Positions 29,627 to 48,600 of a stretch of DNA of 64,000 nucleotides are shown one piece after another (the stretch's first letter is position 1; every line of letters begins with the position of its first letter). The notes under the pieces are model-generated. The model was not told the origin of the DNA, ran no database searches, and saw only the letters and a program-made list of their open reading frames with translations. A program made the position numbers and the translations under genes. The DNA is from Klebsormidium nitens (taxonomy: Eukaryota > Plantae > Klebsormidiophyceae): positions 112,461 to 176,460 of the forward strand of contig DF237088.1 in assembly GCA_000708835.1 (NCBI GenBank), given 5' to 3'.

Positions 29627-31104
29627 CCGAAGCGTCCCAAGGTGCGAAGTCGAAGCCACCCGCCAGTCTCACGGAGGAGTCCATCGCGCTCATATTCTCA
29701 CCATCACCACCTTCACTATGGCAAGCCAATCATCAATAGCGTCGCTTGTCGCTTGACTCTGCTCAAAGATAATGTGATGGGCCAATTGCATGGCTAATCT
29801 GTCCGTTCACCAGACGGTCGATGAAAATCTTACAGGCTTAGGTCTAAGTGGACTTGACCCGACGTTGCCACATGTTATAAATCGCCGACTTGCAAGAATG
29901 TACGTGTCGCTTATGTGAGTCATGCATTCACTATACCTTCGATCTGAGGTTTAGTACATGTCAATTAAGCAGTTGTTGACCGGGTCCCAATTTGATTCCT
30001 AAATATATGGCCACATGCAAAAGTTCATGATCCCACGTCTAACCAAGGATGCATGTGTACGTCATGCGCCAGGCGTCGCGATCGTACATTCACAGCTATA
30101 CACGAGGGTTCATATACATAGTACAAGTTGATTGTTCGTTTGTGCATGAGGTGTCGGATAGGTTTCGTTAATTTGTCGCATGTGGCGTGGCATGCCACCC
30201 TGTACATAACAATCAGATGGCACATGGTCCGCAGTCTCAATCTTGATCTTGCGCGCATGTCATAGGCATCCGCAACCAGGCTTTGTTAAATAACGACGGC
30301 AGTTCACTTCAACATCGAATGCCTGCTGGATTTCACTGCATTGATGCGAAGCAGGCGAAATAGCAAATATCAATCATGAGTGCATCTGACTCTGCATGAG
30401 CTGCTTTGCAACATGCAATTACTATCATCAAAAATTAGTCAACCATGTATATGTGAGAATTCTGCCTAAGGACTTGGCATCAAACCAATACTATCTATCA
30501 GTTTGCAATCAAGATCATCTCAGTGATGCAAGGAAAACGAAGCTGAAAGAGGCATAGCACTTTGTCAATTGCTGATAGAGTTGAAAAAGGCAGTGCAACA
30601 AAACAAGAAGGTGGATGTAATTAGATTGAATACTATTGTACCGCAACCAAATAAGAAAGGCGTTCTTGGATCTACTGCTCAGCGAACAAATGCAAGACTG
30701 TCAACAGCCCACCAGATTAGAACAAGTCAAGCTCGACACAGGACACTTCATCATCTAATGGAGTTTGGCTCTACTAGGCAAGCCAGGCAACTACAATGCT
30801 GTTTCTGCAAGATCCTTCAATGGTGAGTCTTGAAGTGAACTCTTCTAATAACTTATGAAAACCAAGTCTCCTAACTCAACGGGGACAGCCGCTAATGCCA
30901 CACCATAAGTTGGGCCTCTTGTACAAGAGAGATTAGAATAATTCCACAAGGCAACTACTTTTCCAAAACTGACCGCACCCATTTGATTGAAGCGTTTCAT
31001 CAGCTCCTTTGCTCCTTTGCATATTTCATACTGGATCGGTATGGTCAGGAAACTTGATGGAGAGCCCCCACATTGTGTCCAAAAAGATACAGCTTGAGGA
31101 TCTC

Positions 31105-31539
31105 TCAAGAGTCAATTCCAAGGGCGTACCTCCCATCTTCTTCCTTTGAGACAGTGTGCAAGACCAGGTCCGACAGGTCGTGGCCCCAAATCCCATACTG
31201 ACCTTCTGTTGTGTCCCTGTTCATCATGCCTGGGACATGACCCGCGACCTCTGGGCTCGTCCTGTCTTCCTCGGTGTAGATCCGCTGGTACAATGCTGAA
31301 ATGGCGTGCGCTAGCGCAGCCCGCGTGAAGTGTTGTGCACCGTCAAAGGGCTTGACCTCAAATTCAAACTCATCTTTCAGCGGGTAATCTGCAATTACAC
31401 GGATGCTGCTCTCATTGATCACCACTTCCTCAGCATCTCTCAGGTTGGCTATGTCATTGGTGGGGTCTGCCAAGGAAATGTAAGGAGAAGTTTCATCAGG
31501 CTCATTAGGACGGACCACTTGAAATTTGATATCCGCCAT
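31105..31539 (-). CDS. Intronless 144-aa orphan protein with a DYPL...FTR...Y..IY.EE...NR..T.G.YGIWGHD..DL.L...GIDS signature (prokaryote/giant-virus-like family)
   Basis: First true ATG is at 31539 (MADIKFQ...). The ORF track begins at an upstream TTG. The protein looks like a compact globular domain with no low complexity and a strongly conserved-looking YGIWGHDLSDLVL motif. Confidence 0.8.
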   Translation of the reverse strand: MADIKFQVVRPNEPDETSPYISLADPTNDIANLRDAEEVVINESSIRVIADYPLKDEFEFEVKPFDGAQHFTRAALAHAISALYQRIYTEEDRTSPEVAGHVPGMMNRDTTEGQYGIWGHDLSDLVLHTVSKEEDGRYALGIDS

Positions 31540-32256
31540 CTTAACTACCGTAGGTAATTTAAAAGCCAAGACCTTGCAATTACTTACTGGCCTACACCAA
31601 CTGAGAAGCTTGAAGCAAACTTGACGAGATTTGAATGAAGTATCTACAGTCTTCTAAGTTTTGTTTGCAAGGACTTCTTCATTTTATCAGCCATCTTTCA
31701 GAGACTGAGGGCACCAGTGGCAGGAGTAATAGAACGCTGGAGCCTGGCCTAGCACAAGAGATCACATACGTAGTTTAGGCTGACCCTGGATTGACCAGCT
31801 GGGCGTTTAGCAGTTCGGTGCATGACCTTCTGCTGACGGCACGAAGAACGGCTTTACCTGCTTCCACAGCCAGGCAGGAAAAGCCAGCCTTTCTAATGGG
31901 TATTAACCCTCACAACTTCAAGAGCCGGTTCCTCGTCTAAAGCAGTCTTTTGTGAGAAATTTATCGCACCGATTGCGAAAAAGCTCCACTGCGGGTGTGG
32001 TCGCTTGAAGGTAGGTAATACAGGGTTTGTTCCTGGCACGAGATCTGCAAGGCTGCTCTGTGAGCAGTGCTGTGCTTTGTGGGTATGCTGTGTGCGGTAT
32101 GCTGACATTTAGGTCAGTAGGTAGAAGTTTCAGAACCCCTTCTGAACAGCTTTAGAGGGCCATAGGTGGTGACGGGAATGGGCGCGGACTCGACTTTTAA
32201 CTGCCACCGCTCACAAGCTAGCACCAGCGAGCCTTTTTGGTAACGGTCGACCATCG

Positions 32257-34841
32257 ATGGCTGCCCGCCATCTCCTCGGCGTCCTTCGGTCGCTGACGGC
32301 AAATCCTGGGGAGCATCTGTCTCATGCTGCTGCGGCCCGAGCATATGCTTCTTCTGCTCTGCTGCGCACCAGCCCCGCCTCCGCCTTTCTAGGCATCCAG
32401 TCTGCCTGGGATCGAGCGTTCAGCACGGACAATGCGTCGAGCAGTGCGCAAGGGTTGGGAGCAAGAGAACGGCGGAGAGCCAAAGAACGTTCTCGCACAG
32501 CTGTCCAGCCAGGAGGGGTCAAAGAGCGCGTCCCTTTTGAGCTGCAAGAGGGCGGCGGCAAAGGCGATCAGGACCTGGACCTTCAGGAACCGACGGGGAT
32601 CTTTCACATCTACGACCGCGAGGAGCCGAATGAGAAGGACGAGGACGATCCAGGGGTGCCGTGGGGAACGATCTCGCTGACGGGGCCGCCGCCGGACTAC
32701 CTGTCGCCCAGTCTGAGCACCAAATCGAAGAATGCAATCTATGCAGCGTACAAGGAGGACCCGAGCGAGAAGACGGTGGCCAAGCTGGCGGCCGACTATA
32801 AGATCCTGAAGCAGCGTGTGCAAGTAAGAGAATGAATCCCGTGCCTGTTCGAATACGAGCTCCTGTGCTGTCATGGCATTCCACAGGCTAGCCGAACCAG
32901 CCCCGAATGCTGACACCTCGCTAGTGGTTCCTCGCTTGTGCTTTCCAGACAAACAGCAGCTTCTCTGTGATTCTCCGAAGGAGCCCCAAATGCTTCTGCG
33001 AGCCCCAAATGCTTCTGCCTAGATGGTGGCTGCACCGCCACGGGTTTGGTCATTCAATGTGCTATTCCAAAGGTGCCACTCTTTGTCTGAGCATTCCTGG
33101 AAACACAGTACCTCTAGTCGATCTGCAGTTCATCAGCAGATTAGCCGCCCCATCAATTTGACACTCCCTATTGCTGTTTCTGTGTCAAAAGTATCTCGGG
33201 TTTTGCTGCTTTCATAAGGCACTCTTCGACTTTGCCAAGCTTGGGCCAGAATGACTTTAGAACACCATTTGGGCGTTCTCTGATTGGTATGGCGACCTTC
33301 TTGGATTAGTACGGCTACCTCAGAGAGACAAAAAGCGTTCTCTACGTTGCAGGCCATTCTTTTCTTGAAGGAACGGGAGGAGGTTTGGGAGAAGGAGGTC
33401 CTGGAGAAGCAGGACGATGAAACCAAGGAGATGTTCAAGGAGATGGATGAAGTGTTTGACTCGTAAGCCACCAATCAACTGTGTCAGCTTCTTGGGATTT
33501 TATTGGGAAGAAGTTGGTAGTGTTGTGGCCATGGTCATGGCCTGGTTAAAGGAAGCGTAGTATCGTCATATGAGAACCATAAGGCTGCCCTGCTTTTGCA
33601 CAGTAAGTACTTTTGTGTGTCTTGACTAATGAAAGAGTGATTTTTCGTAGCAGACCTTTGAAATGCAAGGTACATGCGAATTGAGAATTGCTATTGTTGT
33701 CTGAAAGATCAGCTTGATAAGATACTTCTCTTCTCCCTTATGAATTGTGCACCTTTCTGAGTGCTTTCGTGCACTAGGAGCAGCTGGGGCAGCGCCTTAG
33801 GGGCATCTGGGCGTAAAGTCTTGCTGTTATCGGTTCGCTTGTATTGTCGTCATGGCCAAGAATTAGAAGGTTGGCAAGAAGTGGGGTTCCTGCATGACCG
33901 ATTGCCTTAAGTGTCCGTCCGGTTTGAATACGTTCTCGAAGTTAGTTGTCAAAGTCGGCTCTGATTGTGGACAAGACATGATTGACCTTCGAACAGTCAC
34001 AGAAGAACGAACTCGGGCTTTGCTTCATCGTTTCAAAGGATGGCTCGAAGAGCTAACGCCCAACACGACACTCCGCTGCAGGGAGGCGTCGGAACGAGGC
34101 GGAGGTGAGCGGTTGTGGCTGCCGATGGCCACTCGGATGAAACCAAAACTGGTGGTCGAGAACGACGAGTACGAAGCGGACGCCGTCGTATCGACCAGCG
34201 GCATGTCGTGGGATAAGGCCTCGGAGCGCTACGAGGGGATCGAGTACCTGGAGTTTCTGGAGCGCCTGCAATTCAACCGGAGACTGGTGAGCGACGCCGC
34301 ACTTTTTGACTTTGCACGTCTGTTGCCTGGTTCTTGGAAAGTGAGCAGAACATTCACTTCGGAACTTGCAGGGTGCTTCTTGACTGTGCTCTTGTACATG
34401 ACGCTCTAGTAAGTATGGTGTGCCCTTTGTCGAACGGATCGGGAAGAGGTATCTGATGGGGCTGTCTCGGAAGCCCACTACCGAAGAGCTCGGAATCCGT
34501 TGAATCGAGGGTATCCAAGTGTACCTATGTCGAGCCCCTTACGGCGACGACACAGAAGCTGAACTCCGCTGTTTCCAACTCGGGTGGTTCCCTGATCTCA
34601 TCTCTTACGGCTCTGTTCTCTCTTACAGGGCGAAGTCAAAGCAAAAGCAGAGGACCGGAAGCGACCGGATGAGGGGTGGACGTTTCTGATTGAGGAGCTA
34701 GGCAAAGAAGGGAAGAGAGGAAAGGGCGGGGGAAAGCGCTTCGTCGCAAAAGCGGATGGGACCCGCAGGCCGCTGAACGACCTAGAGAAGCTGATGATGA
34801 AGAGGGAGACGCCCAAACGACGGAAGTTTGACTTCTTGTGA
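32257..34841 (+). CDS. GCD1: GAMETE CELL DEFECTIVE 1 / mitoribosomal mS45 (Bot1p-like domain)
   Basis: Exons 32257-32823 (mitochondrial presequence; KNAIYAAYKEDP..TVAKLAADYKILKQRVQ), 33352-33462 (AILFLKERE), 34082-34287 (EYLEFLERLQFNRR) and 34629-34841 (GEVK...GWTFLIEELGKEGKRGKGGGKRF...DGTRRPLNDLEK...RETPKRRK). Confidence 0.88.
32981..33018. repeat. Tandem 19-bp duplication GAGCCCCAAATGCTTCTGC x2 in GCD1 intron 1
   Basis: Units read directly at 32981 and 33000. Confidence 0.9.
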
Positions 34842-36016
34842 GGGTTGTGAGGCTGACCTGGACGAACGGGACTGGGTTTGATCGTTACAATTAGTCTCCG
34901 ATTAGTCTGCCAGTGCCACGTTCATCACTTTCATTGCAGTTCCGTACCTCGAAGGTGCAATTGTTGCGGAACTCATTCCGCAAGTTCTCACCCGCTGTGG
35001 GCTGGATTGAAGGTCGATTGGCCTGGACGCCACACAACGCGCATTGAGCAGTACAATGCGAATGTATTGCTGTGGCCAATATTAGGAAAACAGTGAAGCT
35101 GCGTTGTTCAGAGTACTAATTGCTGGCTTAACTTAACACTGTGACATGCAGAGTCTGACGCCGTCATTCGGGGCACGGCGCCCACAGATGACGTCTTACT
35201 ACAGATGTGCGGATAATCGATGCAAATGTCCAACGTTTGCGTGCTCATGCGTTTGCTTGAGCCGGTTGCAATCGGCAAAGGGTGCAGTGCATGCGAACAT
35301 GCATGGAGCAAAGATCGCCGTGGCCGCCAGTGACTCAGAGCTGCGGGTGTGCACACAATCCTCGCTACATACTTTGCGCCATATCAACCACCGCACCATT
35401 GACGTGCAATCGCAGTGACAGCATACACCACTCAATCCAAGATTTGCTCGATCTCTTGCAATGCATGTCCACGGTTTGGTCCAGCAAACTCGTGGACGTC
35501 ATCAACTTGCATGTAGAGGGCCTGTGGACGCCGTGGCAATCAGCTCTTGCCAACCGAGACGGTACGCCCGCATAAGCCCATCCGCTTACATTATTTCGAG
35601 GAGACTTGTGAAGAATCGACAACCATTGCATGACAGGTGCGGTCTATACGCGATGCCCAAAACACCACTTGTCGCACCCTCCGCCTGCATCTGACGGGCA
35701 TCTAACCTTTACACCGACTCGGTGCATGCGTGACGATCTTGTTTGTGCTGCACTGTTGCACATAAATGATTAAGAACATACGAACCTGGACGAGATCGGC
35801 CAAGATGGCGCATACCCTTTCGTGCCTTGATGCCTTGCAGCTTATCGGCCATTTTCTCTCATCTAGCTGCACCCTTTGCTGATGAACGGTGGTGCAAAAC
35901 CGTATGTGCGACAGCAAAACAGTACCAGTGATTGTTGCTTACAAACTCTGATCGACTCACAAAGAGAGTGTACCACGTCGCACCTTTCAGAACTGCCATG
36001 AGTACGCTGTCAAAGC

Positions 36017-39000
36017 CTAATTTCCCGAATAGGAGCACTGCCTCCGGTGTCCAGAAGCCCAATCCTTAACCTGCAGGATTTGGAGGAGACAGATTCGTGC
36101 ACGCTTCTCCCCAATGGGCGTCCATAAACGGCAAGTAAGGCTCTACGGAGTTTGGACCCAAGAGATAGAAACACGTGCTTCATCGCGCTTGCCGCAAGGC
36201 ACTTGGTGAGTTTGATACGTGATGCGGAGTTTGGTGCGTGCTCACCTGACACTTTTTGGAGCAGTAGCGAGCCGATCCACACCTGCCGCATTTGTGGAAA
36301 GTATTCTTGCTCTCTTCGACGACTTTGCCCTCGCATCCCTGCAGACGAACAGTCACGGAGTTTGGCAAGAGATACGGATACAATAAGAGCAGCGCATACT
36401 GTGTGCACAAATGCAGATTCCTGGACAGGTCTGGCAGACGCTTAGAGAAGTCCGGTTCGCCGCCTCAACCATACCGGCTCAAGGAAAGGCCGTAAAAAAG
36501 TTGAAAGGGGCGTCGTTTCGAGGCCCCTCTCTTGAACGTAGGTATTCATAATCCGTTCGTAGCAGTGCGGGGGCAGACCACCTGTACGCATGTACGCAAC
36601 TGGACGGTGTCGCGTTGTTCCGCGTAAAGGCAGATGAGAAGACCCGCTCTTCGCGGCTCACCGGATTGCTGCACGCCTTCAGACGAAACCCGCGCGCCAA
36701 TTCCTTCCAAAGCCTGCCAACCGCTGCCTCCAGCTGGACCCACGTGTCCCTGGCCGCTTCGGACGGCGCCACTCTCCGCAAAGCGCGCAGGACCCGCAAC
36801 ACGTCCGCGCAGGCGGCCGCGGCCCCCGCGCGCGCGGCCTCCAGCAGCGTGTCCTTGCGCAGCGCCGCCGAGGTCTCCGGCAGGCTGTCCAAGGCGTCCA
36901 GAACGGTGGCGAGCAGCTCCATTAGGTTGTTGTGCGCGACCTTCAGCTCGCAAATCATGTCTAACGACGCGGCCGCGTCGCTCGCGCGAGAGCGCGGCGG
37001 ATCCGAGTCGTCCACGCGCCGCGGCCCGAAGACGGCCGTGAGGCTGCCGGGCACCAGGCGCAGGGAGTGCACGACGACTTCGATCTGCGGCAGCACCGCG
37101 CACTGGACCACCACCCGGTTGCGGCAGCACGCGTGCAGGACGGATAGGATCGCCGACGTGACCCCGAAGAAGCTCGTCTCGGAACGCACCGCGTGGCGCA
37201 AGTGCTCCAGCGCAAGGCGGCTGAGCAAGCGGTGCCCCTTGTTGAACACCCCGCTCACGTTCACACATGGCCCGGCTGTCGTAGCCGCCGGCGTCAGGGG
37301 GATCCCCCTCGCTGCTCGGCCGCCACAGGTACTCCTCTGCATCAACGTCTGTGCGCTCTGCAGCTCCCTGCCAGGGGCCCCTGTCGCCGAACAGGAGCGC
37401 AAAGGTCTTGAGATTGCTCAGCGTCACCCAGCCGATGGATGACGTGGCCGTGAAAGGAAACAGCTTGATGGCGGAGATGGCCAGATCGACGTAGAGGATC
37501 TGCATCCGCTCCAGGAGCTCCCGCCGGCGTGCAATCTCCATATGCGACAGCAGGCCTAGCACGTGGTTCATCGCTTCTTCCACCAGGGATCCCCCGCGCG
37601 AAAGCAGGTCCTCGCACCACTGTAGAAGCCGCACGCCTGTGGTGAGAAACAGCTCGCGCGAAGACCGCTCCTTCTCGTCCAGCTCGGGGAGCACGGCCAC
37701 GAGAAGGTTGACCCCGCCTAAGATGACCGCAGCCTCCTTGTGCTCTCTTTGTGTCGCCGCTCTTGCCGCCTGAATGTCGCTCACTTCAGAAACAGTCAGC
37801 GCGAGGATCTTGAAAACGTTGTCTACGAGCCCCTCGGCCACAAGCGCCTCCGCGCTCGCACGCGCGCACCCTTCCAATCTCTCTGCACCTGTTTGGAGGA
37901 GGGACCCCGCCTGCTTCCACTTCTTCCTCTGGACGAGCGCAATCGCCTCATGAAAGTCTACCCTGTTGGCGGCGCCTGGCGAGCTCCTTTTGCGTGAAAG
38001 GAGCTCGCGAGAAAGGAGCTCCGCCTTCTCGCCCTTCTCGAGACTCAGTTCTTCCAGAGCACTGTGCAAGAAGGCGACCCTGTCGCCTAAGCGTGCCAAG
38101 ATATGGGGGCGCACAATTGCGTGAGAGTTCAGATATGGGACCATCTTCTGGTTCACCACCCGAGTGAAGAGCTCCAGCCTCATCTGGATCCCCGGAAGCT
38201 CTTTCAGGCCTCGCTCGACAATGATGCAAAGAAGGCGGCCGCCGATGTCGAGTAGAGTCTCGAGTGTAAACGGACCGAAGTCGGGAGGCATTGCCTCCCG
38301 GAGAAGGCTGTCCCAGGTCTGGTCGACGAAGGAGAACAGATCGGCGATCCACACCCCGGTCGCCGCCCCCGCAGCGTTTTGCAGGATGGAGTCCGGGAAA
38401 GCGTGCAGAGCGAAGACGATTTGCTGGATGCTGAAGGCAACGCTCGAGAGCTGGCGGAAGCCTGAGACACGGGCCACTCCAGCTCCCACTTCCGGCGGAA
38501 GATTGCGAGGAACTGGCGGAACAGGTCCGGGATTCGCGCGGAATCCCGGAAGTGCGGGCTGGCCTTGAGCAGGTTACATGTGAGGAAGGCGAAGTTGAAC
38601 TCAATGTTCCGGGCGGAGTCTTGCTCGTTGGGAGGGCATGGCGTCAACGCAATCAGACGGTTGACGAAGCGGCAGAGGCAGGGCACAATCTCGGAGCGGC
38701 CCAGCTGTAGAGCAACGAAAGGCTTGTCAGATTCTCGCCACAAATTGGACATTGATAGTACGAGGAAAAACGACGTCGTAGAAAAGCTTGCAAGGAAAAC
38801 ATAGTGGTGCAACCCGTTTGATTGCTACAAGTCTGTAACAACCGGCGTCTTGCCGGTTCTCATCTATCACCCTCGAGAATACACTTCTGAGCTTCGCATC
38901 GCCGTTACGAACACGTGCTCCTTAAAGCTAAGAGCCGTGAACTTGGTAATAAGAACCTGTGAAACAAAGCGAGGCATGTCATTTGGAGAATTCAGAAACA

Positions 39001-39902
39001 AGATATGGAGCATTACATGCTCGGAAAATTCATCAACGCTGCTGAGCTTTGAAATGCACCGCAGGTGAGCCTCCAATCGGTGATTGCTCCTTGCTTCGTC
39101 CAAACGATCCAACAGGGCCTTTACAAAAGTTTCATTCTTTAGAAGGTGGGTGACCTGTAAACAAGGAAAACCGGGGTGTCGGCAGTGCAACAAATCTACC
39201 GCGTTTCACGTGATTGATACGACCATGATCGTACATCAAACCTTAAAGCTTCATACTGGATGCAAATCGTAGAGGACAAAGAAGCCTGCAAGCCCGCAAA
39301 ATAAAACTATGATCAAAACTGACAAAACCCTAGCATGAAGAATATGATGACGGGCGTTTTCTGGAGGACAAAGAGGCCTGCGACTCGTATCACCTCGAAA
39401 TGCTGGATGAAAGAACACGAGCAGTCACATGAATATCAATGGTGCTTTCCGCTCCAACTTACTGCTTTGAACTCCGTTGAGGGTTTGACTTTCATCTGGT
39501 TCTGCTCCTTTTCTGAGATCACACTCAGGGAGCCAAGCGTGTCAGCGACGCGAGTGAAGTCTTCCAGGGCCTTAGAAGCATCCTTTGAAAGGGTGTCTTC
39601 AATCTGCTTCACCAGGCCAGCCACAGCCTGCACACGAAGCAACCAACACAAAGTTTGCTCCTACGAACTAGAAGCAATATTATTATGCTACCCGGATCCT
39701 TGGGCTAAACAACATGATCAGAAGGTGGTGTTTGATGATCGGCTGCACAACCGAGAACTCTCTCACATGTCTCAATCCTTCTTCAATTTCATTTACGCAG
39801 ATTTATGGACGTCATGAAGCTTCAAGCACACTTTCTCAAGCAGCGGAAGCGGGCCGTAAAATGAATTCTGTATGCATGGCTTACCTTCCTTTTCTTCGAC
39901 AT
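36017..39902 (-). pseudogene. Large helical protein with C-terminal MYND zinc finger, copy A (two frameshifts)
   Basis: Micro-exon MSKKRK (39902-39885), AVAGLVKQIED...EFKA, VTHLLKNETFV..., large exon 38704-36662, and MYND exons 36338-36246 (GCEG...CGRCGSARYCSKKCQ) and 36070-36017 (VKDWASGHRRQC). Relative to copy B it has a 1-nt deletion at about 38470 and a 1-nt insertion at about 37264. Confidence 0.75.
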
Positions 39903-40970
39903 TCTGGCGGCGAATCCTTCTGACGCTCCTGCTGCTGTGGCCTTGATTCTCTAGTGCCGCTTCCGTCTTGCATATGCAAAAAGGAGCGCCTCGCTACAAC
40001 CCTGAAAAGCCGGTGGACAGGGACTTGGACGTGATCTTGACTGCGACCCTGGAGGCTGGAGGCTGCTGAGGACCGCAACTAGGAGCCTCCAAAAGCGTCC
40101 GTAGAGGTTTCGAAAGACTTCAGGACCCTGCTTGGTTGACAATCGATCGATCCAGTTGACGGTACAAGTGGGAAGCAAAAGCTAGCCTTGATGAGTCGAC
40201 GTGACGATTCGACGTGACGATGCATCCTTCTCACGGCTACAGTAGTCGAAGCCTACGGCACAGACGCTCGCTTCTTCGCTTTCTTTGACTACCATGATTG
40301 CGCTGTCGTCGTCACGTCATGTCAATCGACTTTGTAATCTTACTTTGTGCTCCGCATCTTCCTCCTCGAGTAGACCGATCTTACAGCTTCTCCCGATCAA
40401 CCTGCCAAATTTAGTGTCATCTAATCTACACTAATTTCACTCTATCTCAGACTGACTAAGTTAGTATGAAATCTCCACTAAAACTAGCAGGTTGCTCGGA
40501 AGAAGCTGTACTAATATCACGAGAAGAGACTGGAACGATGACCTTGGATTCCTGACCGTCGAGACCAAGCTGCAGAGGATTTCCAGATTAAACCAGTCCT
40601 TTTGGCACACCTTGACTGATATTAGCATACGTGCCACGTCTTCAGATTGGATACTCAAAAGATCCACGTTTGCATCAGATGCCACAATGTGACGTGACAA
40701 GCCCAAAGGCCCGAGCAACTCTTAATTTGACTCGAGACTTTGAAAGGTATACCATGTCTTTCCAATGCATTTTGACCTCTTCGTCTGGAAAGTAGCGGGA
40801 GGCGCTTCTTTCTCCAGTTTCAGGACTTCTTGAAAGATGTGTTCAGCCGCAACAAGAAGATAGCGTAGGAGCAGATTAAGAGACGGGAGCGACGTTTGCA
40901 GAGCGGATCGGAGCTCTTCACAGATAAGGCTACGGCAGCAGGCCGAGCCGCAGGAGAATCTACCGCCAAA

Positions 40971-43900
40971 ATGGCTAAGAAAACGAAGGTGAGCTATGGA
41001 TACCGTAATTTTCTTACAGCTCGAAGATTCTGGCGCTTAAGGTTCAGTCTATTCTTGAATCTTCGTGATATACATCCATGTCTTTGCAAGCAAAGGTTGG
41101 GGAGTTCTTTTGATATGATGTGACCCGGGACATCAAGTTTGAGGTCTGCCTGCACTTCTCAGCCGGTGTTCACACGAAACTGGGGCACTATACCACATCT
41201 CCCGCGCTTATCTCGTGTCTTGTTTGATCCGTGTGCAGCGCGCTGTGGCTGACTTGGTGAATCATATTGAAGATATTTTCGAAAGGAATGCTCTAGAGGG
41301 CCAAGAGGAGTTCAGCGGCATCGTTGACAAGCTTGGGTCATATCCAAGTGCCATCTCAGAGGAGGAGCAGAACCAATTGAAAATCAAGCCCTCAAAGGAG
41401 TTCAAAGCAGTAAGTTGAAGCAGAAGTGAGAACCTTGAAATTCTGCATGTGACCGCTTGTGACCCTTCATTGAGCACTTAAGATAAAGACGAGTGATACC
41501 ATCTATTTATCGGCCAAGTCACGTTGCCTATCCTTCTTGCATGTTCGGTCCTTGTCAACCTTGAGCAGGTTCTCATTATTGCGCGTTTGTATTCTCTGGT
41601 GTCTGATCCAGAAGAATCGATTGCTTTACAATCAGCCCTTTTGACACTCTTTTGCGTACCTGTACAGATCACCCGTTTGCTGAAGACAGAAACATTTGTA
41701 GAAGCCCTGTTGGGTAACCTGGACAACGCCACCAGCAACCACCAGCTGGAGGCTCACCTGCGGTGTGTTACGAAGCTTAGCAGCGTTTTCAACTTTGCAG
41801 AGCAGGTAATGCTTCAAATCCTACTCTGTAGGATCTATTCCTATGCATGTCTGCGTAGAACCTCCAGATCACCACTCCAAAACTCCTCGACTTGGAAAGA
41901 AGATTCGCGCAAGCGGCAACGCGAAGCTCAGGACTCGAGTCTCTCTTTCTATGAAGACACATTTTCAAGGGTCACGGACCGCAACCCGCAAGAGGCCTTA
42001 CGTTAACAGAGGTATTCGTAAACAAGATGCACCACCAGAAAAGACTCGTCAGAAGCTCTTCGACGAACGTTCCCTGAGCCCTGCTGGCAGTCATACCCGG
42101 GTCCAGGGACGAACTCTGATTTGCCTGTCGTCGGTCTACAGCTAGGCCGCTCCGAGAGTGCGCCCTGCCTTCTGCGGTTGGCCGACCGACTGATCGCGCA
42201 GACGCCATGCCCTCCCGAAGAGCAAGAGTCCGCCCGAAACGTCGAGTTTTACTTCGCCTTCGTCACGAGTAACCTGCTCAAGGCCAGCCTGGACTTCCGC
42301 GAGTCCGGGTGCATCCCGGACCTCGTCCACCAGTTTCAAGCAGTTTTCCGCCGGAAGTGGGAATTGGAGTGGCCCGGTGTCACAGGCGTCCACCAGCTCT
42401 CGAGCGTCGCCTTCAGCATCCAGCAAGTCGTGTTCGCTCTGCAAGCATTCGCGGAGTCCGTTCTGCAAAGCGTGGCGCAGGCGGTGACCGGGGAGTGGAT
42501 CGCCGACCTGTTTTGCTTCATTGACCAGACGTGGGACAGACTTCTCCGCGAAGCAATGCCGCCAGACGTCGGTCCCGTCACGCTCGAGACTCTGGTTGAC
42601 AGCTGCGGGCGGCTGCTTGTTGTCCTTGTCGACGGAGACTTCAAGGAACTTCCAGGGGTCCAAACGAGGCTGGAGCACTTTGCTCGTGTGGTGAACCTGA
42701 AGCTGATTCCTCGTTTGAAATCAGACATAGTCGTCAGCCCCCATATCCTGCCACGCGTGGGCCATAGAGTCGCATTCTTGCTCGGTGCTTTGAAAAGCCT
42801 TTCTCTCGAGAAGGGCGACGAAACGGAGGGGGAAAGAAGCTCGCCAGGCGCTGGCAACACGGTGGACTTTTCTGAGGCGATCGCGCTTGTCCAAAGTGGA
42901 AATTGGCAACAGGCGGGATCCCTCCTCAATTCCACCGCAAGAAGGTTGGAAGAGCATGGCACGCGCGCACGAGCGGAGGCGCTGGTGGCCAAAGGCTTCG
43001 TGGAAAGCGTTTTCAAGATTTTGGCGCTGGCTTTGCCCGAAGAGAGCGTCGATCGAACGGCCATCGCGGCGACAGAAGGACGGTCCCAGAAGTCTGCGTT
43101 CATCTTAGGCGGGGTCAACCTTCTTGTGGCCGTGCTTCCAGAGCTGGACGAGACGAAACCGTCTTCGCGAAAGCTGTTCCTCACGACAGGGGTGCGGCTT
43201 CTGCAGTGGTGCGAGGACCTGCTTTCGCGCGAGGGATCCCTGGACGAAGACGCGATGAACCGCGTGCTGGGCCTGCTGACGCAAATGGAGATCGCACGTC
43301 GGCGGGAGCTCTCGGAGCGGATGCAGATCCTGTACGTCGATCTGGCCATCTCCGCGATCAAGCTGTATCCCTTCACGGCCACGTCGCACATCGGCTGGGC
43401 GACGCTAAAGAACCTCAAAACCTTCACGCTCAAGTTCGGCGAGAGAAGCCCAGGGCGGGGAGCTGCAGAGCGCACCGACGTCAATGCAGAGGAGTACCTG
43501 TGGCGGCCGAGCAGCGAGGAGGATCCCTCCGACGCCGGCGCCTACAACAGCCGGGCTATGTGGAACATGAGCGGGGTGTTCAACAAGGAGCGCCGCCTGC
43601 TGAGCCGCCTCGCGCTGGAGCACTTGCGCCACGCGGTGCGTTCCGAGACGAGCTTCTTCGGCGTCGCGGCGGCGATTCTGTCCGTCCTGCACGCGTGCTG
43701 CCGCGACCGGCTGGTGGTCCAGTGCGCGGTACTGCCGCGCATCGAAACTATCGTGCACTCCCTCCACCTGGTGCACGGCAGCCTCGTGGCCGTCTTTGGG
43801 CCGCTCTGCGCGGACGACCCGCCTCGGGAGCCCGGGCGCGACGAGGCCGCGACGTTGGATATGATGTGCGAGTTGGAGGTTGCGCATGATGACCTGACGG

Positions 43901-44762
43901 AACTGATCGCCACGATCTTGGACGCCTTGAAAAACCTGCCGGGACCAATGGTTATCGTGCGCGATGGCACGCTGCTGGAGGCCGCGTGCGCGGGGGCCGC
44001 GGCCGCGTGCGCGGGGGTGCTGCGGGACCTGCGCGCTTTGCAGAGAGTCGCGCCGTTCGAAGCGGCCGAGGAGACATGGGTCCAGCTGGAGGGCGCTCAA
44101 ATTTGGTCTGGAGGTGTGCCATAATTCGGTGAGCAGGTCAGAGCGTCTGCTGATTTGTCCTTAGGCGGACCAGCGCGACAGGACACTGATGCGTTTGCGA
44201 GATTCTTAAATTTACACAAGTTCCTGCAAATGAAGACGTTCGGCTTCTGAATTGAGGGGTCAAAGGCAACATCTCAACCACCGGGGAAAGGTCTGGTTTC
44301 AAGTTGTATGTAAACCTTCCCTTGAGCGCCCCTGATGTATTTCGCGAAGCGGACAGTCGGTTTTGAGCGGTGCAACCGTACATAGAGATTGCACCTGCCG
44401 CATTTGCATCTCCTGCCCAACGGCGGGAAACTTTTCTCTGCAGAGATGCATGGGCAAGATCGTCGAAGAAAGCAAGAATACATTCAGCAAATGCGGCAAG
44501 TGTGGTCTGGCTCGCTACTGCTCGAAAGAGTGTCAGGTGAGCACGTCCCTGCAAAACATCAGGCTTTTGATATGTGATGAGAAACTGAACAGACTCGAAC
44601 AAGCCCGGTTCCCAATCGCGCATCGTGAAAACGGGTTTGCCCTTTGAAGACGCCTGATCATGACGAAGAACTATGCTAACTGACCTTGGTTGTGTATTGA
44701 CTCTGCAGGTCCTGGATTGGGCTTCTGGGCATCGGGGGCAATGCTCCGGTCGGACCAATTAG
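40971..44762 (+). pseudogene. MYND-finger paralog, copy B (29-nt deletion truncates the protein before the MYND finger; may still make a truncated product)
   Basis: Micro-exon MAKKTK at 40971, exon structure matching copy A, large exon 42142-44128, and MYND exons 44444-44536 (93 nt, same as A) and 44709-44762 (54 nt, same as A). The frameshift gives TAA at 44122-44124. Confidence 0.7.
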
Positions 44763-45664
44763 TAGTTTACAGCGTACTTACGACGACACCAAGGGGACAT
44801 GAAAGTGGCCGTACACTGTTCTAGAGGAATTGGATTGCTTCTAGAGTCTCATCAATGTGCGGCGACTTTGGGCGCATGCATGGCGCTTCACCGTGCCTGT
44901 TCTCTTTTTGGCCGGCTTTGCATTCCGTAACGCTTTCTCTGCGACTCGGAAATAGATTGGATGTACGTAGGCTCTTTCTGAACGCAGCTGCTCGTAATGT
45001 GTGTACGTGGGCTCTGCAGCGGCAAGCCCTTGCCAGAGCAATCTGGCAGGGCTGGCCGCCACACATAAACGGGCTGGATTATAGCTTTACACTGCATGAC
45101 AATTAAACAATTCAGTGACAGCGGATATTAATAGTGCTAAATGAAACTGTATCTCGATGAGTGTGTCTGTACGTATTTTGGCGCAATTTGCTTCAATACA
45201 ATGATACGTTTCGACTCGCTTCGCACATGGTATTGGCGTGATCACATGATGGTGCGTAGTAATGTTATTCGACACTGTGTCCTGCGTACTCATATACGCA
45301 CGTAAAGTGACATCAATTCTTGCAATAAGTTCAGAAGTTTAATTATCCTCACATGCGCATATGCATGGCGCGGAGCGATCTGCACTGGGTGACTTGACTT
45401 CATGGACTCAGATTGGCGGCCCGGGCAGGCCCCGAACCTGCCTGCCATGTGTATGTCATCCTTCTGGCCGGGCGGCTTGAAAATGCGGCAAGATGACAAC
45501 TCCATCCTTCTCACCTTAAACACGGCGTGTGACTCGGACGGTATTTTGGATGGCTCAGTGGCGATGCTTGAGTAGCGAGACTTACAGTCAAGTGTTTGAA
45601 CCGCCACGGATGTAAGTATTAGCAAAAAGTCCAACGACCAGTATCACGATGCTTATGCGCACAA

Positions 45665-48600
45665 TCATTTTTCGACTTTCAGCTGCTCGTCGAGCTCGGT
45701 AAATTTTCGGTAGAAAGCTTTGAAGTGCCGGTAACAAATATCTACGTCCTTCGTGCCGCACATCTCTCGCACACTGTGCATCGACAACTGGGGCATGCCA
45801 ACATCGATCGTCCTGATGCCTACCCCCGAGGACAGGATGGGCCCGATCGTCGAACCGCAGCCCATGTCGTTCCGAACTACGAAATCTTGCGTCGGGATGC
45901 CTTCTCTCTTTGCAAGTTCCCGGAAAAGGAACGCCGTCACCGCGGTGGTCGCATACCGCTGAAGGGAAAAGACATCAGGCGTTAAGAACTGACCCGTCAG
46001 CGGATACTTTTCAAGGCCTTGAATGAGCTTCTAGCATAACTTGCCGTGACTGGGCTGCCACACCAGCCCGTTCCGTTCTTATGAAAGAAGTCTGTTACTT
46101 CAGATACTGCGGCTGACGGCTGAGCCTTGTAATCCCGCTTTTGTACCACAGCTGATCCTACGACATCCTTCCCTCCCAACAAGGATGCCAAAGCTTTCCC
46201 CATTTTAAAAACGCAGAAAGAGGCCCTGTAACCGCTTCTTACACAAGCGCTGAGCTCACCTGGTTGGCGTTGTGCTTGATGACGAGGCCCTCGTGCATTT
46301 TGGGCTGGTGGTGCTCCTCGTGGCGCTCCGGGTAGTTGGGGTGCAGCGCGTGCGCCATGTCCGCGGACACCAGGAAGCTCCGCCGGATCGCGCGCCACTC
46401 CACGCCCTCCGCGCGCTCGCTGCCCGCCAGCAGCGTCGCCACGCGCTTCATGGCCTGGAACATCGTCGGGCTGCCCGCGCCCTGCGCGCTGTCGGACCCC
46501 ACCTGGGCGGGATGGAGAGTGCGGGTTAATGAATAGGGAGCACAGGTGCTTGCGAAAGCCACACTACATAGAACTCTCAGCTCCTGATCTGACACTTGAA
46601 AGGCACAGAGAACCGCGCTTGCCAATGTGAGGGGTGGCAGTCCGGGAGCTTTAAAGGCAGGCCAGGAGCTTCTTGGCGACACAACAATCGCCGAAGCCAT
46701 CTTTTTGGAAAATCTCTCAAATTGTACTACCCATCCAGCTCGCAACGGTCACCTGCAGTACAACTGCCAAGGTTTGAAGAAACCGCCTCAAAGACGGAAT
46801 CTTTCTCGCGGCTCACCTCCTCATTGTCGAAGAGCGCCACCATCTGCACGCTCTTCTCCTGCGCGAGCCACTCGCCATCGGCCACGGTGTCGATCAACGC
46901 GCGGAGCGCGCAGTACGATGAGGCCAGGTTGTCCAGCCGGCCTGCGAGAACAGCAAGGCATCGCGCATCAGCATCACTTTGAGAACACGCTCTGCAGGCG
47001 GCCTCTAAACCAACATTCTAAGTATGAGTACCAATGAGGGAAGCCATCCCGCTCTCACGCACTCCTGGAGCCCAGACTGCCAGTCTTGTAACCGCTCCTC
47101 GACACGTGGCACGAGCTGAGGCATCTCAAGTGCGCCCCAGGGCTCCAAAACATAAAAGCAACGACTCGAAGGCCTCACCGGAGTAGATGAACTCCTTCCT
47201 GGCTCCAGCAATGACGCTGGGCTGCGTGTCGCACACGTGCAGGTCGAAGTCCGCGATCTCTTCCGGGTCCACCTTCAGCTCGTCCGCCAAGATCTGTGTG
47301 TTGCGATAAGTGGTCACTTCCATATCTCGAAAAGGAAACATGCCGTTCGACTTTACTGCTTGACTGTACGAGGTCACCATGCGCTGCTTTTTGCAGCTGG
47401 TGACTCTAAGGTGTCGGCTAAGCCAGGGAAATCCTAAAAGCAGGCCACCTTCGAGTTTCAGATCGAAAGTAAGCAGGAGGCGCTGAAATGCCATTGACTC
47501 GTGAAATAAACCACAAAGAAGCTACTTCCTATAAGAAGATATGCCCGCTTTCGATCTCGCTGCCCCCTCAGAACCCACATACTTCGAGACTAAGCAAAAC
47601 CAAATGCTGAGGCTATTTAGCTGACCAGCAACGAAGAGACCGAGACAAGAGTTGTTCTAACGCAATTTCTTTCGCATCCCACCTGCAGCAGCAGCGGGTG
47701 GTGCGCGTTCTTCTTCCCTCCGTCGTCCTTCTTCCCGCCCGCTTCGTCCTTCTTCCCATCGACCTCAGCCTTGATGGCGGTGGCCAGCACGGGCGCGAGG
47801 TGCGTCTCCAAGTTGGGCTTGAACCCCTCCGTGTTCACGTTGCGGTCCAGGTGGATCGCCAGCGTCGGGATGCGCATGATCGGGCGCGACACCTGAACCA
47901 GCTCGTGCGAGAGGCGGCCGTCCTTGCGCCGCAGCAGGACACGGCCAGCCACGCTGCAGCAAAGAAACAGTTTAAGAGAGGGGGGAGGAAAACGAGGGAC
48001 CAAGAAGCAATAAAGCAAGGATGATCGTTGTGTTTCGGCCCTGTGAAATTTGTTGGGAGTGTGGTCGACCGGACCAGAGAGGCCGCAAAATTAAAGAGCC
48101 TTCAACTCAGTTGACACTGGCATATGCAGCGACTGGCAAGAAGAGGGTAAACAGCCTTTGCAGGCCTCTAAACTAATCTGTTTTGAGAAAGAGAATTAGG
48201 CTGGTCCATTAGGATGGTGATTTCTTCATCAGCAGGTTTGAACTAAGGTGGTCTTCAGCCCCAAATTTTGTAGGCAAGAGAAAACCTTCATTAAGGTGCA
48301 CAACAAAAGGAACGATCCAATGCACCAGGGTCAAAGTTCTGAGAGCAATTAGTATTGCCAACAAAGGATCCTTACAGATGCCGTTGAGCGGACCAAGTGC
48401 AAGGACAAGAACAAACCAGGTTATCAATCTAACCTAGTTTCCAACAAAGTCCAATCTGACCACCCTCTATCCTTGAGAGCAGCAGAAACTGCCTACAAAG
48501 TCTGAGCTTGACACCATCACTTGCCTGAGGTCACGATCGAACCAGGTGTACCAGAGGCCCCCTCCATACGTTTGCACCCCCACGTTGAGGAACCCGTGCT

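Follow-up and report, generated by a model that had tools for sequence, protein, structure and literature searches.

The 64,000-nucleotide stretch of Klebsormidium nitens contig DF237088.1 analysed here (the window; coordinates below are positions within it) contains a small uninterrupted open reading frame (ORF) on its minus strand, and the question raised by this locus is whether the frame is a gene of the alga and, if so, where it came from and what its product may do. The initial annotation had proposed a horizontally acquired, domesticated orphan gene. From our analyses of public RNA contigs, homologous proteins and a second algal locus, we conclude that the ORF is a genuine, expressed and selectively maintained nuclear gene. 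Its product carries the signature of a large family, here called YGIWGH, which appears to be undescribed as such. The explanation that we prefer overall, in which the gene was acquired from a foreign pool, was retained by the alga and encodes a protein that functions through a pocket, has in our judgement an even chance of being right.

Expression, conservation and deposited model of the gene

The ORF reads from ATG to TGA through 144 codons (Table 1), and it contains all of the motifs highlighted in the initial annotation, namely IADYPL, FTRAALAHAISALYQRIYTEED, NRDTTEGQYGIWGHDLSDLVL and a terminal GIDS. A longer frame of 154 residues, initiated by TTG, is unneeded, and the ATG start is preferred because the homologues align from this codon. 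The G+C content of the ORF (0.52) is close to that of the window (0.53), with a G+C content at third codon positions (GC3) of 0.58 as compared to 0.68–0.99 in the adjacent host exons. The product is predicted to be a cytosolic single-domain protein without a signal peptide.

The stretch is contained in 20 public runs from five studies of one organism. The run type 'RNA' is a guess made by the search tool; the contigs are nevertheless spliced at an intron of the neighbouring gene, jumping from 32824 to 33354 with its 529-nucleotide intron gone, and we therefore take the runs to be transcript assemblies. Separate contigs of the ORF transcript are present in two runs (X9, 30562–31731; X15, 30610–31710) and are collinear with the genome, without differences or joints. 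Two further contigs, X1 and X4, start at 30557 and 30597, respectively, span the whole ORF as well as the intergenic gap and extend into the first exon of the neighbour. These contigs define an unspliced messenger RNA of about 1.15 kb, with a 5′ untranslated region (UTR) of approximately 170–190 nucleotides and a 3′ UTR of approximately 500–550 nucleotides. The abundance of this transcript in RNA-derived contigs of all five studies corroborates the expression by the host that had been suggested from the sequence. The 5′-UTR intron suggested along with it is used by no RNA contig: the strings CAG/GTAAAG (31857) and TAG/ (31545) are present, two contigs continue collinearly from the coding sequence, reach 165–190 nucleotides into the proposed intron and end there, and two cross it unspliced. 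Rare isoforms may be masked in such contigs, so that a minor spliced form is possible. The 5′ UTR also contains an upstream ORF of 16 codons, the start of which resembles the MADIK of the main ORF.

A 54-kb metagenome contig with intron-split genes (L095) carries a protein (P0182) that belongs to the same 90%-identity cluster as the best match and is 72% identical to the window protein. This contig is collinear with the window between 22.2 and 49.5 kb (tblastx), with exon identities of 70–98% and a shared order of Vps53 exons, ORF, divergent neighbour and Peptidase_M18 exons, and therefore shows that a second Klebsormidium-like alga has an orthologue at the same locus. For the pair of K. nitens and L095, the nonsynonymous divergence (dN) amounts to 0.18, with saturation at synonymous sites; the close copies on L095 and L006 give a ratio of nonsynonymous to synonymous divergence (dN/dS) of 0.19. 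The gene is under purifying selection. A farther pair of proteins (P0003 and P0042, 59–63% identity) falls in one clade with the Klebsormidium copies (97/94), and the short contigs that encode them have no flanks in common with the window. The contigs of the closest relatives (L006–L009) have no similarity to the window outside the coding sequence.

The only point in favour of a contaminant, a misassembly or a non-coding chance ORF is that family libraries give no annotation. Against it, contigs from two of the RNA runs connect the region of the ORF with the first exon, in its spliced form, of the neighbouring host gene, the stretch recurs in all of the runs and studies mentioned above, the same gene occupies the same place in the second alga, and hundreds of homologues exist alongside a structural model of high confidence. 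As independent data link the ORF physically with a host gene that is spliced, contamination is excluded, and we regard an artefact of any of these kinds as having a practically negligible probability.

A word-based protein search retrieved the deposited 'hypothetical protein KFL_001390260 [Klebsormidium nitens]' (122 residues), which is encoded on a 176-kb scaffold and matches the window protein at 100% across residues 1–112. The deposited model departs from the ORF frame after ...NRDTTE, at a GAAG/GTCAGT string with 31203 as the last exon base, and its final ten residues are encoded at 30307–30333, farther 3′ than the RNA contigs extend. Conservation across the whole family is highest in the stretch that is lost in this way (QYGIWGHDLSDLVLHTV...LGIDS). 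The RNA contigs and the homology both contradict the intron of KFL_001390260; therefore, the gene is correctly read as the uninterrupted 144-residue ORF, and the model in the database is mis-spliced and needs correction. Our literature search found no paper that mentions this locus tag.

The YGIWGH family and its predicted fold

The family is characterized by DYPL, GFTR..L...I...Y..IY.EE, NR..T.G.YGIWGH.L.DL.L and a C-terminal [DE]S at the end of the chain, all of which are found in the window protein. Sequence matches of this protein reach E-values down to 2e-63, and a profile built on nine signal-less members, searched at the level of 50%-identity clusters, retrieved 1,982 representatives with E ≤ 1e-3, of which 1,202 also had E ≤ 1e-10. 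The designation 'orphan' is not upheld by this number of clusters, which include proteins of Tribonema minus and a Yarrowia sp. and transcripts from MMETSP and EukProt. Scans of the protein and its relatives against Pfam, NCBIfam, PHROGs and PADLOC gave no family above the cut-off; the sole sub-threshold match was to ACT_PSP_2, with 14.3 bits against a cut-off of 24 bits.

The searches verified the earlier statement that such proteins occur in Bacteroidetes and in large DNA viruses. In bacteria, scanned with one genome per species, 84 loci were found in Bacteroidota (Chitinophagaceae, Flavobacteriales, Sphingobacteriales and Cyclobacteriaceae), Paenibacillus, Myxococcota (Kofleriaceae and Haliangiales) and Acidobacteriota. 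The bacterial proteins have 175–255 residues with an N-terminal signal peptide and often a lipobox, and the UniRef name of one is 'Lipoprotein'. Phages carry the gene on two IMG/VR contigs, together with genes for a DnaB helicase, a family A polymerase, a 3′-5′ exonuclease, a VapE-like primase and a small terminase, and the BFVD database includes members from Caudovirales. Four signal-less relatives are located on densely packed contigs of giant-virus context, one of which is 428 kb long; such contigs also bear genes for ankyrin, MYND, F-box, NUDIX, histone deacetylase and DUF5832 proteins and many ORFans. On the 428-kb contig (L001; ERZ25039484 contig_66208), of which 16 kb were read, the member is surrounded by genes for a GMC oxidoreductase, ankyrin, MYND and DHH proteins and a 2OG-Fe(II) oxygenase. 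A Foldseek search of BFVD gave a protein of Pithovirus LCPAC401 as the best match, and further matches carry the names Iridovirus LCIVAC01 (a RING protein), Klosneuvirus KNV1, Satyrvirus, Moumouvirus goulette and Marseillevirus LCMAC101.

Members in eukaryotes other than Klebsormidium are few. The protein of Tribonema minus (KAG5177279.1) is encoded on a 743-kb contig (L096, 6001–6884), has an N-terminal MYND finger, and its gene is split by one intron of about 280 nucleotides within the conserved helix of the domain; a EukProt transcript (P0206) is near-identical to it. The member of Yarrowia sp. C11 (CJU90_1081) is located on a 4.7-Mb contig, and besides the one EukProt transcript, one MMETSP transcript encodes a member. 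Outside this set, on a 2.2-kb contig of a very fragmented NCBI assembly (L097, GCA_040384025.1), a 50%-identical relative (P0205) adjoins a small intronless U-box gene (28–606, 851–1420). In the longer proteins of the family the domain is always C-terminal, behind UBA, MYND, RING plus TPR, SAP, Stc1 or cold-shock domains.

An AlphaFold2 model of the window protein, based on an alignment of 35 sequences, has a predicted local distance difference test score (pLDDT) of 93.2 and a predicted template-modelling score (pTM) of 0.89. The predicted fold consists of six short strands within residues 3–62, a long helix (73–94), a loop of 30 residues and a hairpin at the end (126–143). In the ESM Atlas it corresponds to bacterial clusters with template-modelling scores (TM) of 0.80–0.85 and to a Nucleocytoviricota cluster of RING-finger proteins with a TM of 0.76, and a search limited to named clusters gave no match. 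The PDB yielded no match by sequence, with single-sequence and profile searches both empty, and by fold the best Foldseek hit had an E-value of 0.44. The best result of an exhaustive VIA-align comparison, made as a wide search plus a second look, was a Z of 3.8 over 66 residues for PB1/ubiquitin-like folds (residues 42–144), followed by B3 pseudobarrels with Z 2.5–2.7 over the whole chain; both are below the level that is usual for unrelated folds. The roughly 2,000 clusters of 50% identity, which range from bacteria and phages to giant viruses and a small number of eukaryotes, are nameless and structurally unsolved, with a confidently predicted fold that has no match in the PDB.

Residue conservation was counted over 257 sequences (Table 1). 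Y84, Y88 and E91 are spaced i, i+4 and i+7 and lie on the same face of the helix, the other conserved polar residues are mostly found on the following loop, and the chain always ends immediately after the conserved [DE]S. The set of invariant Glu, His, Tyr, Arg and Asp residues suggests a catalytic or ligand pocket. In such an arrangement, Y84, Y88 and E91 on the helix face and N107, R108, H120 and D124 on the loop would form one putative pocket, which may catalyse a reaction or bind a metal or small ligand. The G-H-D-x2-D-L cluster, considered as a possible catalytic or metal site in the initial annotation, is retained in part: H120 and D124 are near-invariant (255 and 247 of the 257 sequences), but D121 is variable (185). 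A reading of D51...E60-x-K62 as a PD-(D/E)xK site was rejected, since E60 and K62 are not conserved.

Origin and possible function of the algal gene

Our trees were calculated with a site-heterogeneous model, from an alignment of only about 150 columns, which limits their resolution. The secreted bacterial forms were separated from all others in each of them, with a support by the Shimodaira–Hasegawa-like approximate likelihood ratio test (SH-aLRT) of 98 for 128 rows, and of 96/98 and 100/99 for 57 and 52 rows. The non-bacterial side comprises the Klebsormidium clade, Tribonema, Yarrowia, an MMETSP transcript and the giant-virus-like sequences. The algal protein shares with the other signal-less forms a shorter loop between the helix and NR (..PGHVPGM.NR versus bacterial ..IP...R.GL.NR) and a shorter C-terminal hairpin. 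The family falls into two halves, with secreted or lipoprotein forms in bacteria and signal-less forms in giant viruses and a few unrelated eukaryotes, and the algal protein is one of the latter.

Nesting within a bacterial clade or a clade of nucleocytoplasmic large DNA viruses (NCLDV) had been named in the initial annotation as support for a transfer; the algal gene is nested in no bacterial clade and lies outside the sampled giant-virus-like clade. A direct transfer from a soil bacterium, either of the Bacteroidota or of the L011/P0005 lipoprotein group, with subsequent loss of the signal peptide, could account for the identity of 45–48% over the full length between the window protein and this lipoprotein group (P0005–P0015/L011). 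Soil is a habitat of both Klebsormidium and these bacteria, and a FastTree analysis of 257 sequences placed the lipoprotein group beside the Klebsormidium clade (support 90). However, this placement was overturned by the mixture-model trees, with their split between the bacterial forms and the rest, and by the approximately unbiased (AU) test, in which forcing the alga beside the most similar bacterial group cost 44.9 log-likelihood units and was marginally rejected (p-AU 0.037). The short loop and hairpin of the algal protein likewise speak for the signal-less forms. A direct bacterial origin is disfavoured, and we consider it very improbable. On the viral side, the four proteins of giant-virus context formed a clade of their own (99/95) that excluded the alga, and a position of the alga as sister to the giant-virus-like clade was not rejected (p-AU 0.28).

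The breadth expected of vertical inheritance, with copies in other streptophytes and in land plants, was not seen among the matches listed (120 of 187, and the 150 best representatives). No land plant and no green alga other than Klebsormidium occurred among them, in agreement with the earlier statement that a land-plant counterpart was not known; as the lists were truncated and the searches subject to length and word limits, this is to be read as 'not seen' rather than 'absent'. The patchiness of the family is most economically explained by exchange within a pool of eukaryotes and giant viruses. A foreign origin is plausible and fits the lower GC3, the lack of an intron, and the Phycodnaviridae-like NCLDV core genes that have been reported in the genome of K. 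nitens and in transcriptomes of other Klebsormidiophyceae (PMC5294986). We propose that the gene may have entered the Klebsormidium lineage from this common pool and not directly from bacteria, that the acquisition probably predates the divergence between K. nitens and the species represented by L095, and that the gene would since have been retained at a single locus next to a divergent promoter. Of the description 'horizontally acquired, domesticated', the second part is borne out by transcription, by the orthologous position in a second alga and by purifying selection, while the acquisition is plausible but unproven.

The competing history is that of an ancient eukaryotic gene which was inherited vertically and lost almost everywhere, with giant viruses having taken it from their hosts and Klebsormidium having retained it. 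Eukaryote copies are indeed known from three supergroups (Klebsormidium, Tribonema and Yarrowia), the copy of Tribonema is split by an intron and fused to a MYND domain, that of Klebsormidium lies between syntenic host genes, and the placement of all known eukaryote copies in one clade was not rejected (p-AU 0.24); therefore, old vertical descent with many losses is possible. It has to contend with an extreme patchiness, with only five eukaryote-named carriers among the matches listed, with the absence of an intron in an intron-rich genome and a GC3 below that of the neighbours, and with giant-virus-like members that far outnumber the eukaryote copies. We judge it unlikely, though considerably less so than a direct transfer from bacteria. 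As to function, one pocket that either acts in catalysis or binds a metal or small ligand, and that would be extracytoplasmic in bacteria and cytosolic in eukaryotes and viruses, seems to us a reasonable proposal that falls somewhat short of probable. Alternatively, the domain might be no enzyme at all, but an adaptor that binds proteins (beta-grasp-like) or nucleic acids (B3-like pseudobarrel), in which the conserved residues are structural. Compatible with this are the weak alignments to PB1/ubiquitin-like folds (Z 3.8–3.3) and B3 domains described above, a TF-B3 row in the ESM Atlas (TM 0.41/0.55), the fusions with RING, UBA, MYND, TPR, SAP and cold-shock domains, and one phage copy within a replication module. 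Yet all of these Z scores are below values common for unrelated folds, invariant charged and polar residues such as E91, H120 and R108 (257, 255 and 253 of 257) are unusual for a pure scaffold, and secreted bacterial lipoproteins are poorly suited to roles in ubiquitin or chromatin biology. A purely adaptor role is doubtful, and so, to the same extent, is some other function. In giant viruses and other eukaryotes, where the domain is a C-terminal module on RING, UBA, MYND, TPR, SAP and cold-shock proteins, it probably represents the recognition or effector end.

Several observations weigh against our preferred explanation of acquisition from a foreign pool, retention and pocket function. The non-bacterial half of the tree is a polytomy that gives Klebsormidium no supported sister, the Klebsormidium clade lies outside the sampled giant-virus-like clade, and old vertical descent, as discussed above, is possible. 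The flanks of the gene are ordinary syntenic, intron-split host genes and contain no viral block. Most members are encoded on unlabelled metagenome contigs, and the label 'giant-virus' depends on a few contexts and on taxon labels in BFVD and the ESM Atlas. With regard to function, our searches gave no solved-structure match and no named homologue, and the neighbourhoods of 80 bacterial loci showed no conserved partner, the commonest neighbour occurring in 12 loci of one lineage; guesses based on operons, such as a toxin-immunity pair, were dropped for this reason. A bolder proposal, which we find improbable, is that the family represents a novel fold, with a catalytic or metal-binding site that is also novel, and has moved repeatedly among bacteria, phages, giant viruses and eukaryotes, and that the Klebsormidium copy is a virus-derived host factor. 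If true, it could have, for example, a ubiquitin-linked or antiviral role, as the fusions of related proteins with RING, UBA and MYND domains hint. The gene adds a candidate to the genes that giant viruses may have exchanged with streptophyte algae. Klebsormidium can be cultured and stands at the base of the land-plant lineage, and its family member is small, soluble and composed of a single domain; combined with the member in Yarrowia, it offers a practical entry to the function of the domain.

Neighbouring sequence and comparison with known systems

The surroundings of the gene are intron-rich, as had been noted initially: the flanking Peptidase_M18 and Vps53 genes have many exons, and an intron of the plus-strand neighbour is spliced in the RNA contigs. 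The head-to-head arrangement with this neighbour is likewise confirmed by divergent transcripts that begin at about 31710–31731 and about 31994, with the starts some 260–285 bp apart. Its proposed identity as GCD1 is unconfirmed; three of its exon ORFs, searched singly, were without a Pfam match. The N-terminus of the neighbour (31994–34865, plus strand) resembles a transit peptide, and the gene is conserved in L095. Further downstream, the interval 34900–45700 spans about 10.8 kb in K. nitens and about 1.3 kb at the same place in the collinear L095. It contains two long, intronless and opposed ORFs (36546–38489, minus strand, 647 residues; 42121–44124, plus strand, 667 residues), which have 69% identity across about 400 residues, a G+C content of about 0.62 and no Pfam match. 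The interval has the appearance of an inverted gene pair specific to this lineage or of a mobile insertion.

Table 1. Features of the YGIWGH locus in the window, and conservation of residues of its product (numbers of sequences out of 257)
Feature	Position	Strand	Evidence
Complete intronless coding sequence, 144 residues and stop (MADIKF...LGIDS)	31105–31539	−	Full-length homologue alignment; RNA contigs collinear, 0 differences
Codons Y84–E91, helix face with Y84, Y88, E91	31267–31290	−	Conservation; helix 73–94 in model
Codons N107–L127, loop NR..T.G.YGIWGH.L.DL.L with R108, G113, H120, D124	31159–31221	−	Conservation
Unspliced transcript; 5′ UTR ~31540–31731, 3′ UTR ~30557–31104	30557–31731	−	Contigs X9, X15, X1, X4
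Upstream ORF, 16 codons (MADKMKKSLQTKLRRL and stop), in 5′ UTR	31644–31694	−	Within RNA-contig transcript
Intron of KFL_001390260, unsupported	30334–31202	−	RNA contigs cross supposed donor unspliced
Divergent promoter gap, ~260 bp	31732–31993		Not covered by X9 and X15; contigs of neighbour begin 31994–31999
Divergent neighbour, first exon, ORF from 32257; then intron 32825–33353	31994–32824	+	RNA contigs
Residue P53			257/257
Residue E91			257/257
Residue Y88			256/257
Residue L125			256/257
Residue H120			255/257
Residue G113			255/257
Residue Y84			254/257
Residue R108			253/257
Residue I117			253/257
Residue D124			247/257
Residue N107			229/257
Residue D121			185/257

Among described protein families, DUF6699 (PF20415) of Basidiomycota has a moderate likeness in predicted structure (TM 0.59 over 123 residues, root-mean-square deviation 4.1). 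At the sequence level, 28 family members yielded no match to it even with a cut-off of E ≤ 10, and our literature search on it found nothing useful. The likeness to beta-grasp domains (Par3-NTD/PB1, Z 3.8/3.3) and to B3 pseudobarrels is weak and topological, has scores within the range of unrelated arrangements and is accompanied by no sequence signal. Zhang, Iyer and Aravind are said to have described, in 2011, SUKH-type bacterial immunity domains that were recruited by eukaryotes and DNA viruses. By description, the SUKH domains resemble the YGIWGH family in their occurrence in bacteria, phages, large DNA viruses and scattered eukaryotes and in their fusions to the ubiquitin system, but the bacterial YGIWGH members are secreted proteins, and their genes are accompanied by neither a toxin gene nor any other conserved neighbour.

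Within the family, the bacterial homologues (for example, the 'Lipoprotein' of Chryseobacterium caseinilyticum and those of Terrimonas, Paenibacillus and Kofleriaceae) have the motifs and invariant residues of the algal protein and a closely similar fold in the ESM Atlas. They differ in their N-terminal signal or lipobox, in a helix-to-NR loop that is 3–4 residues longer, in a longer C-terminal hairpin and in their placement in a separate clade. The 'E3 ubiquitin-protein ligase LAP' of Iridovirus LCIVAC01 (A0A481YQD2) has the same fold in its C-terminal part (Foldseek E 3.3e-7). This protein and the Nucleocytoviricota cluster of the ESM Atlas have an N-terminal RING finger, which the algal protein lacks, and the name refers to the RING part and not to the YGIWGH domain. 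Although the Klebsormidium clade is not nested among the sampled giant-virus-like sequences, the protein of Pithovirus LCPAC401 (A0A481ZAI3) shares with that of the alga both the predicted fold and sequence similarity (32% identity, E 2.9e-12, TM 0.80), and the same predicted fold is found in two proteins of Klosneuvirus KNV1 (A0A1V0SI02 and A0A1V0SHT7) and one of Moumouvirus goulette (M1PHD0). The viral proteins are themselves uncharacterised, and together with the algal protein they represent the signal-less, single-domain form of the family, of about 140–160 residues.

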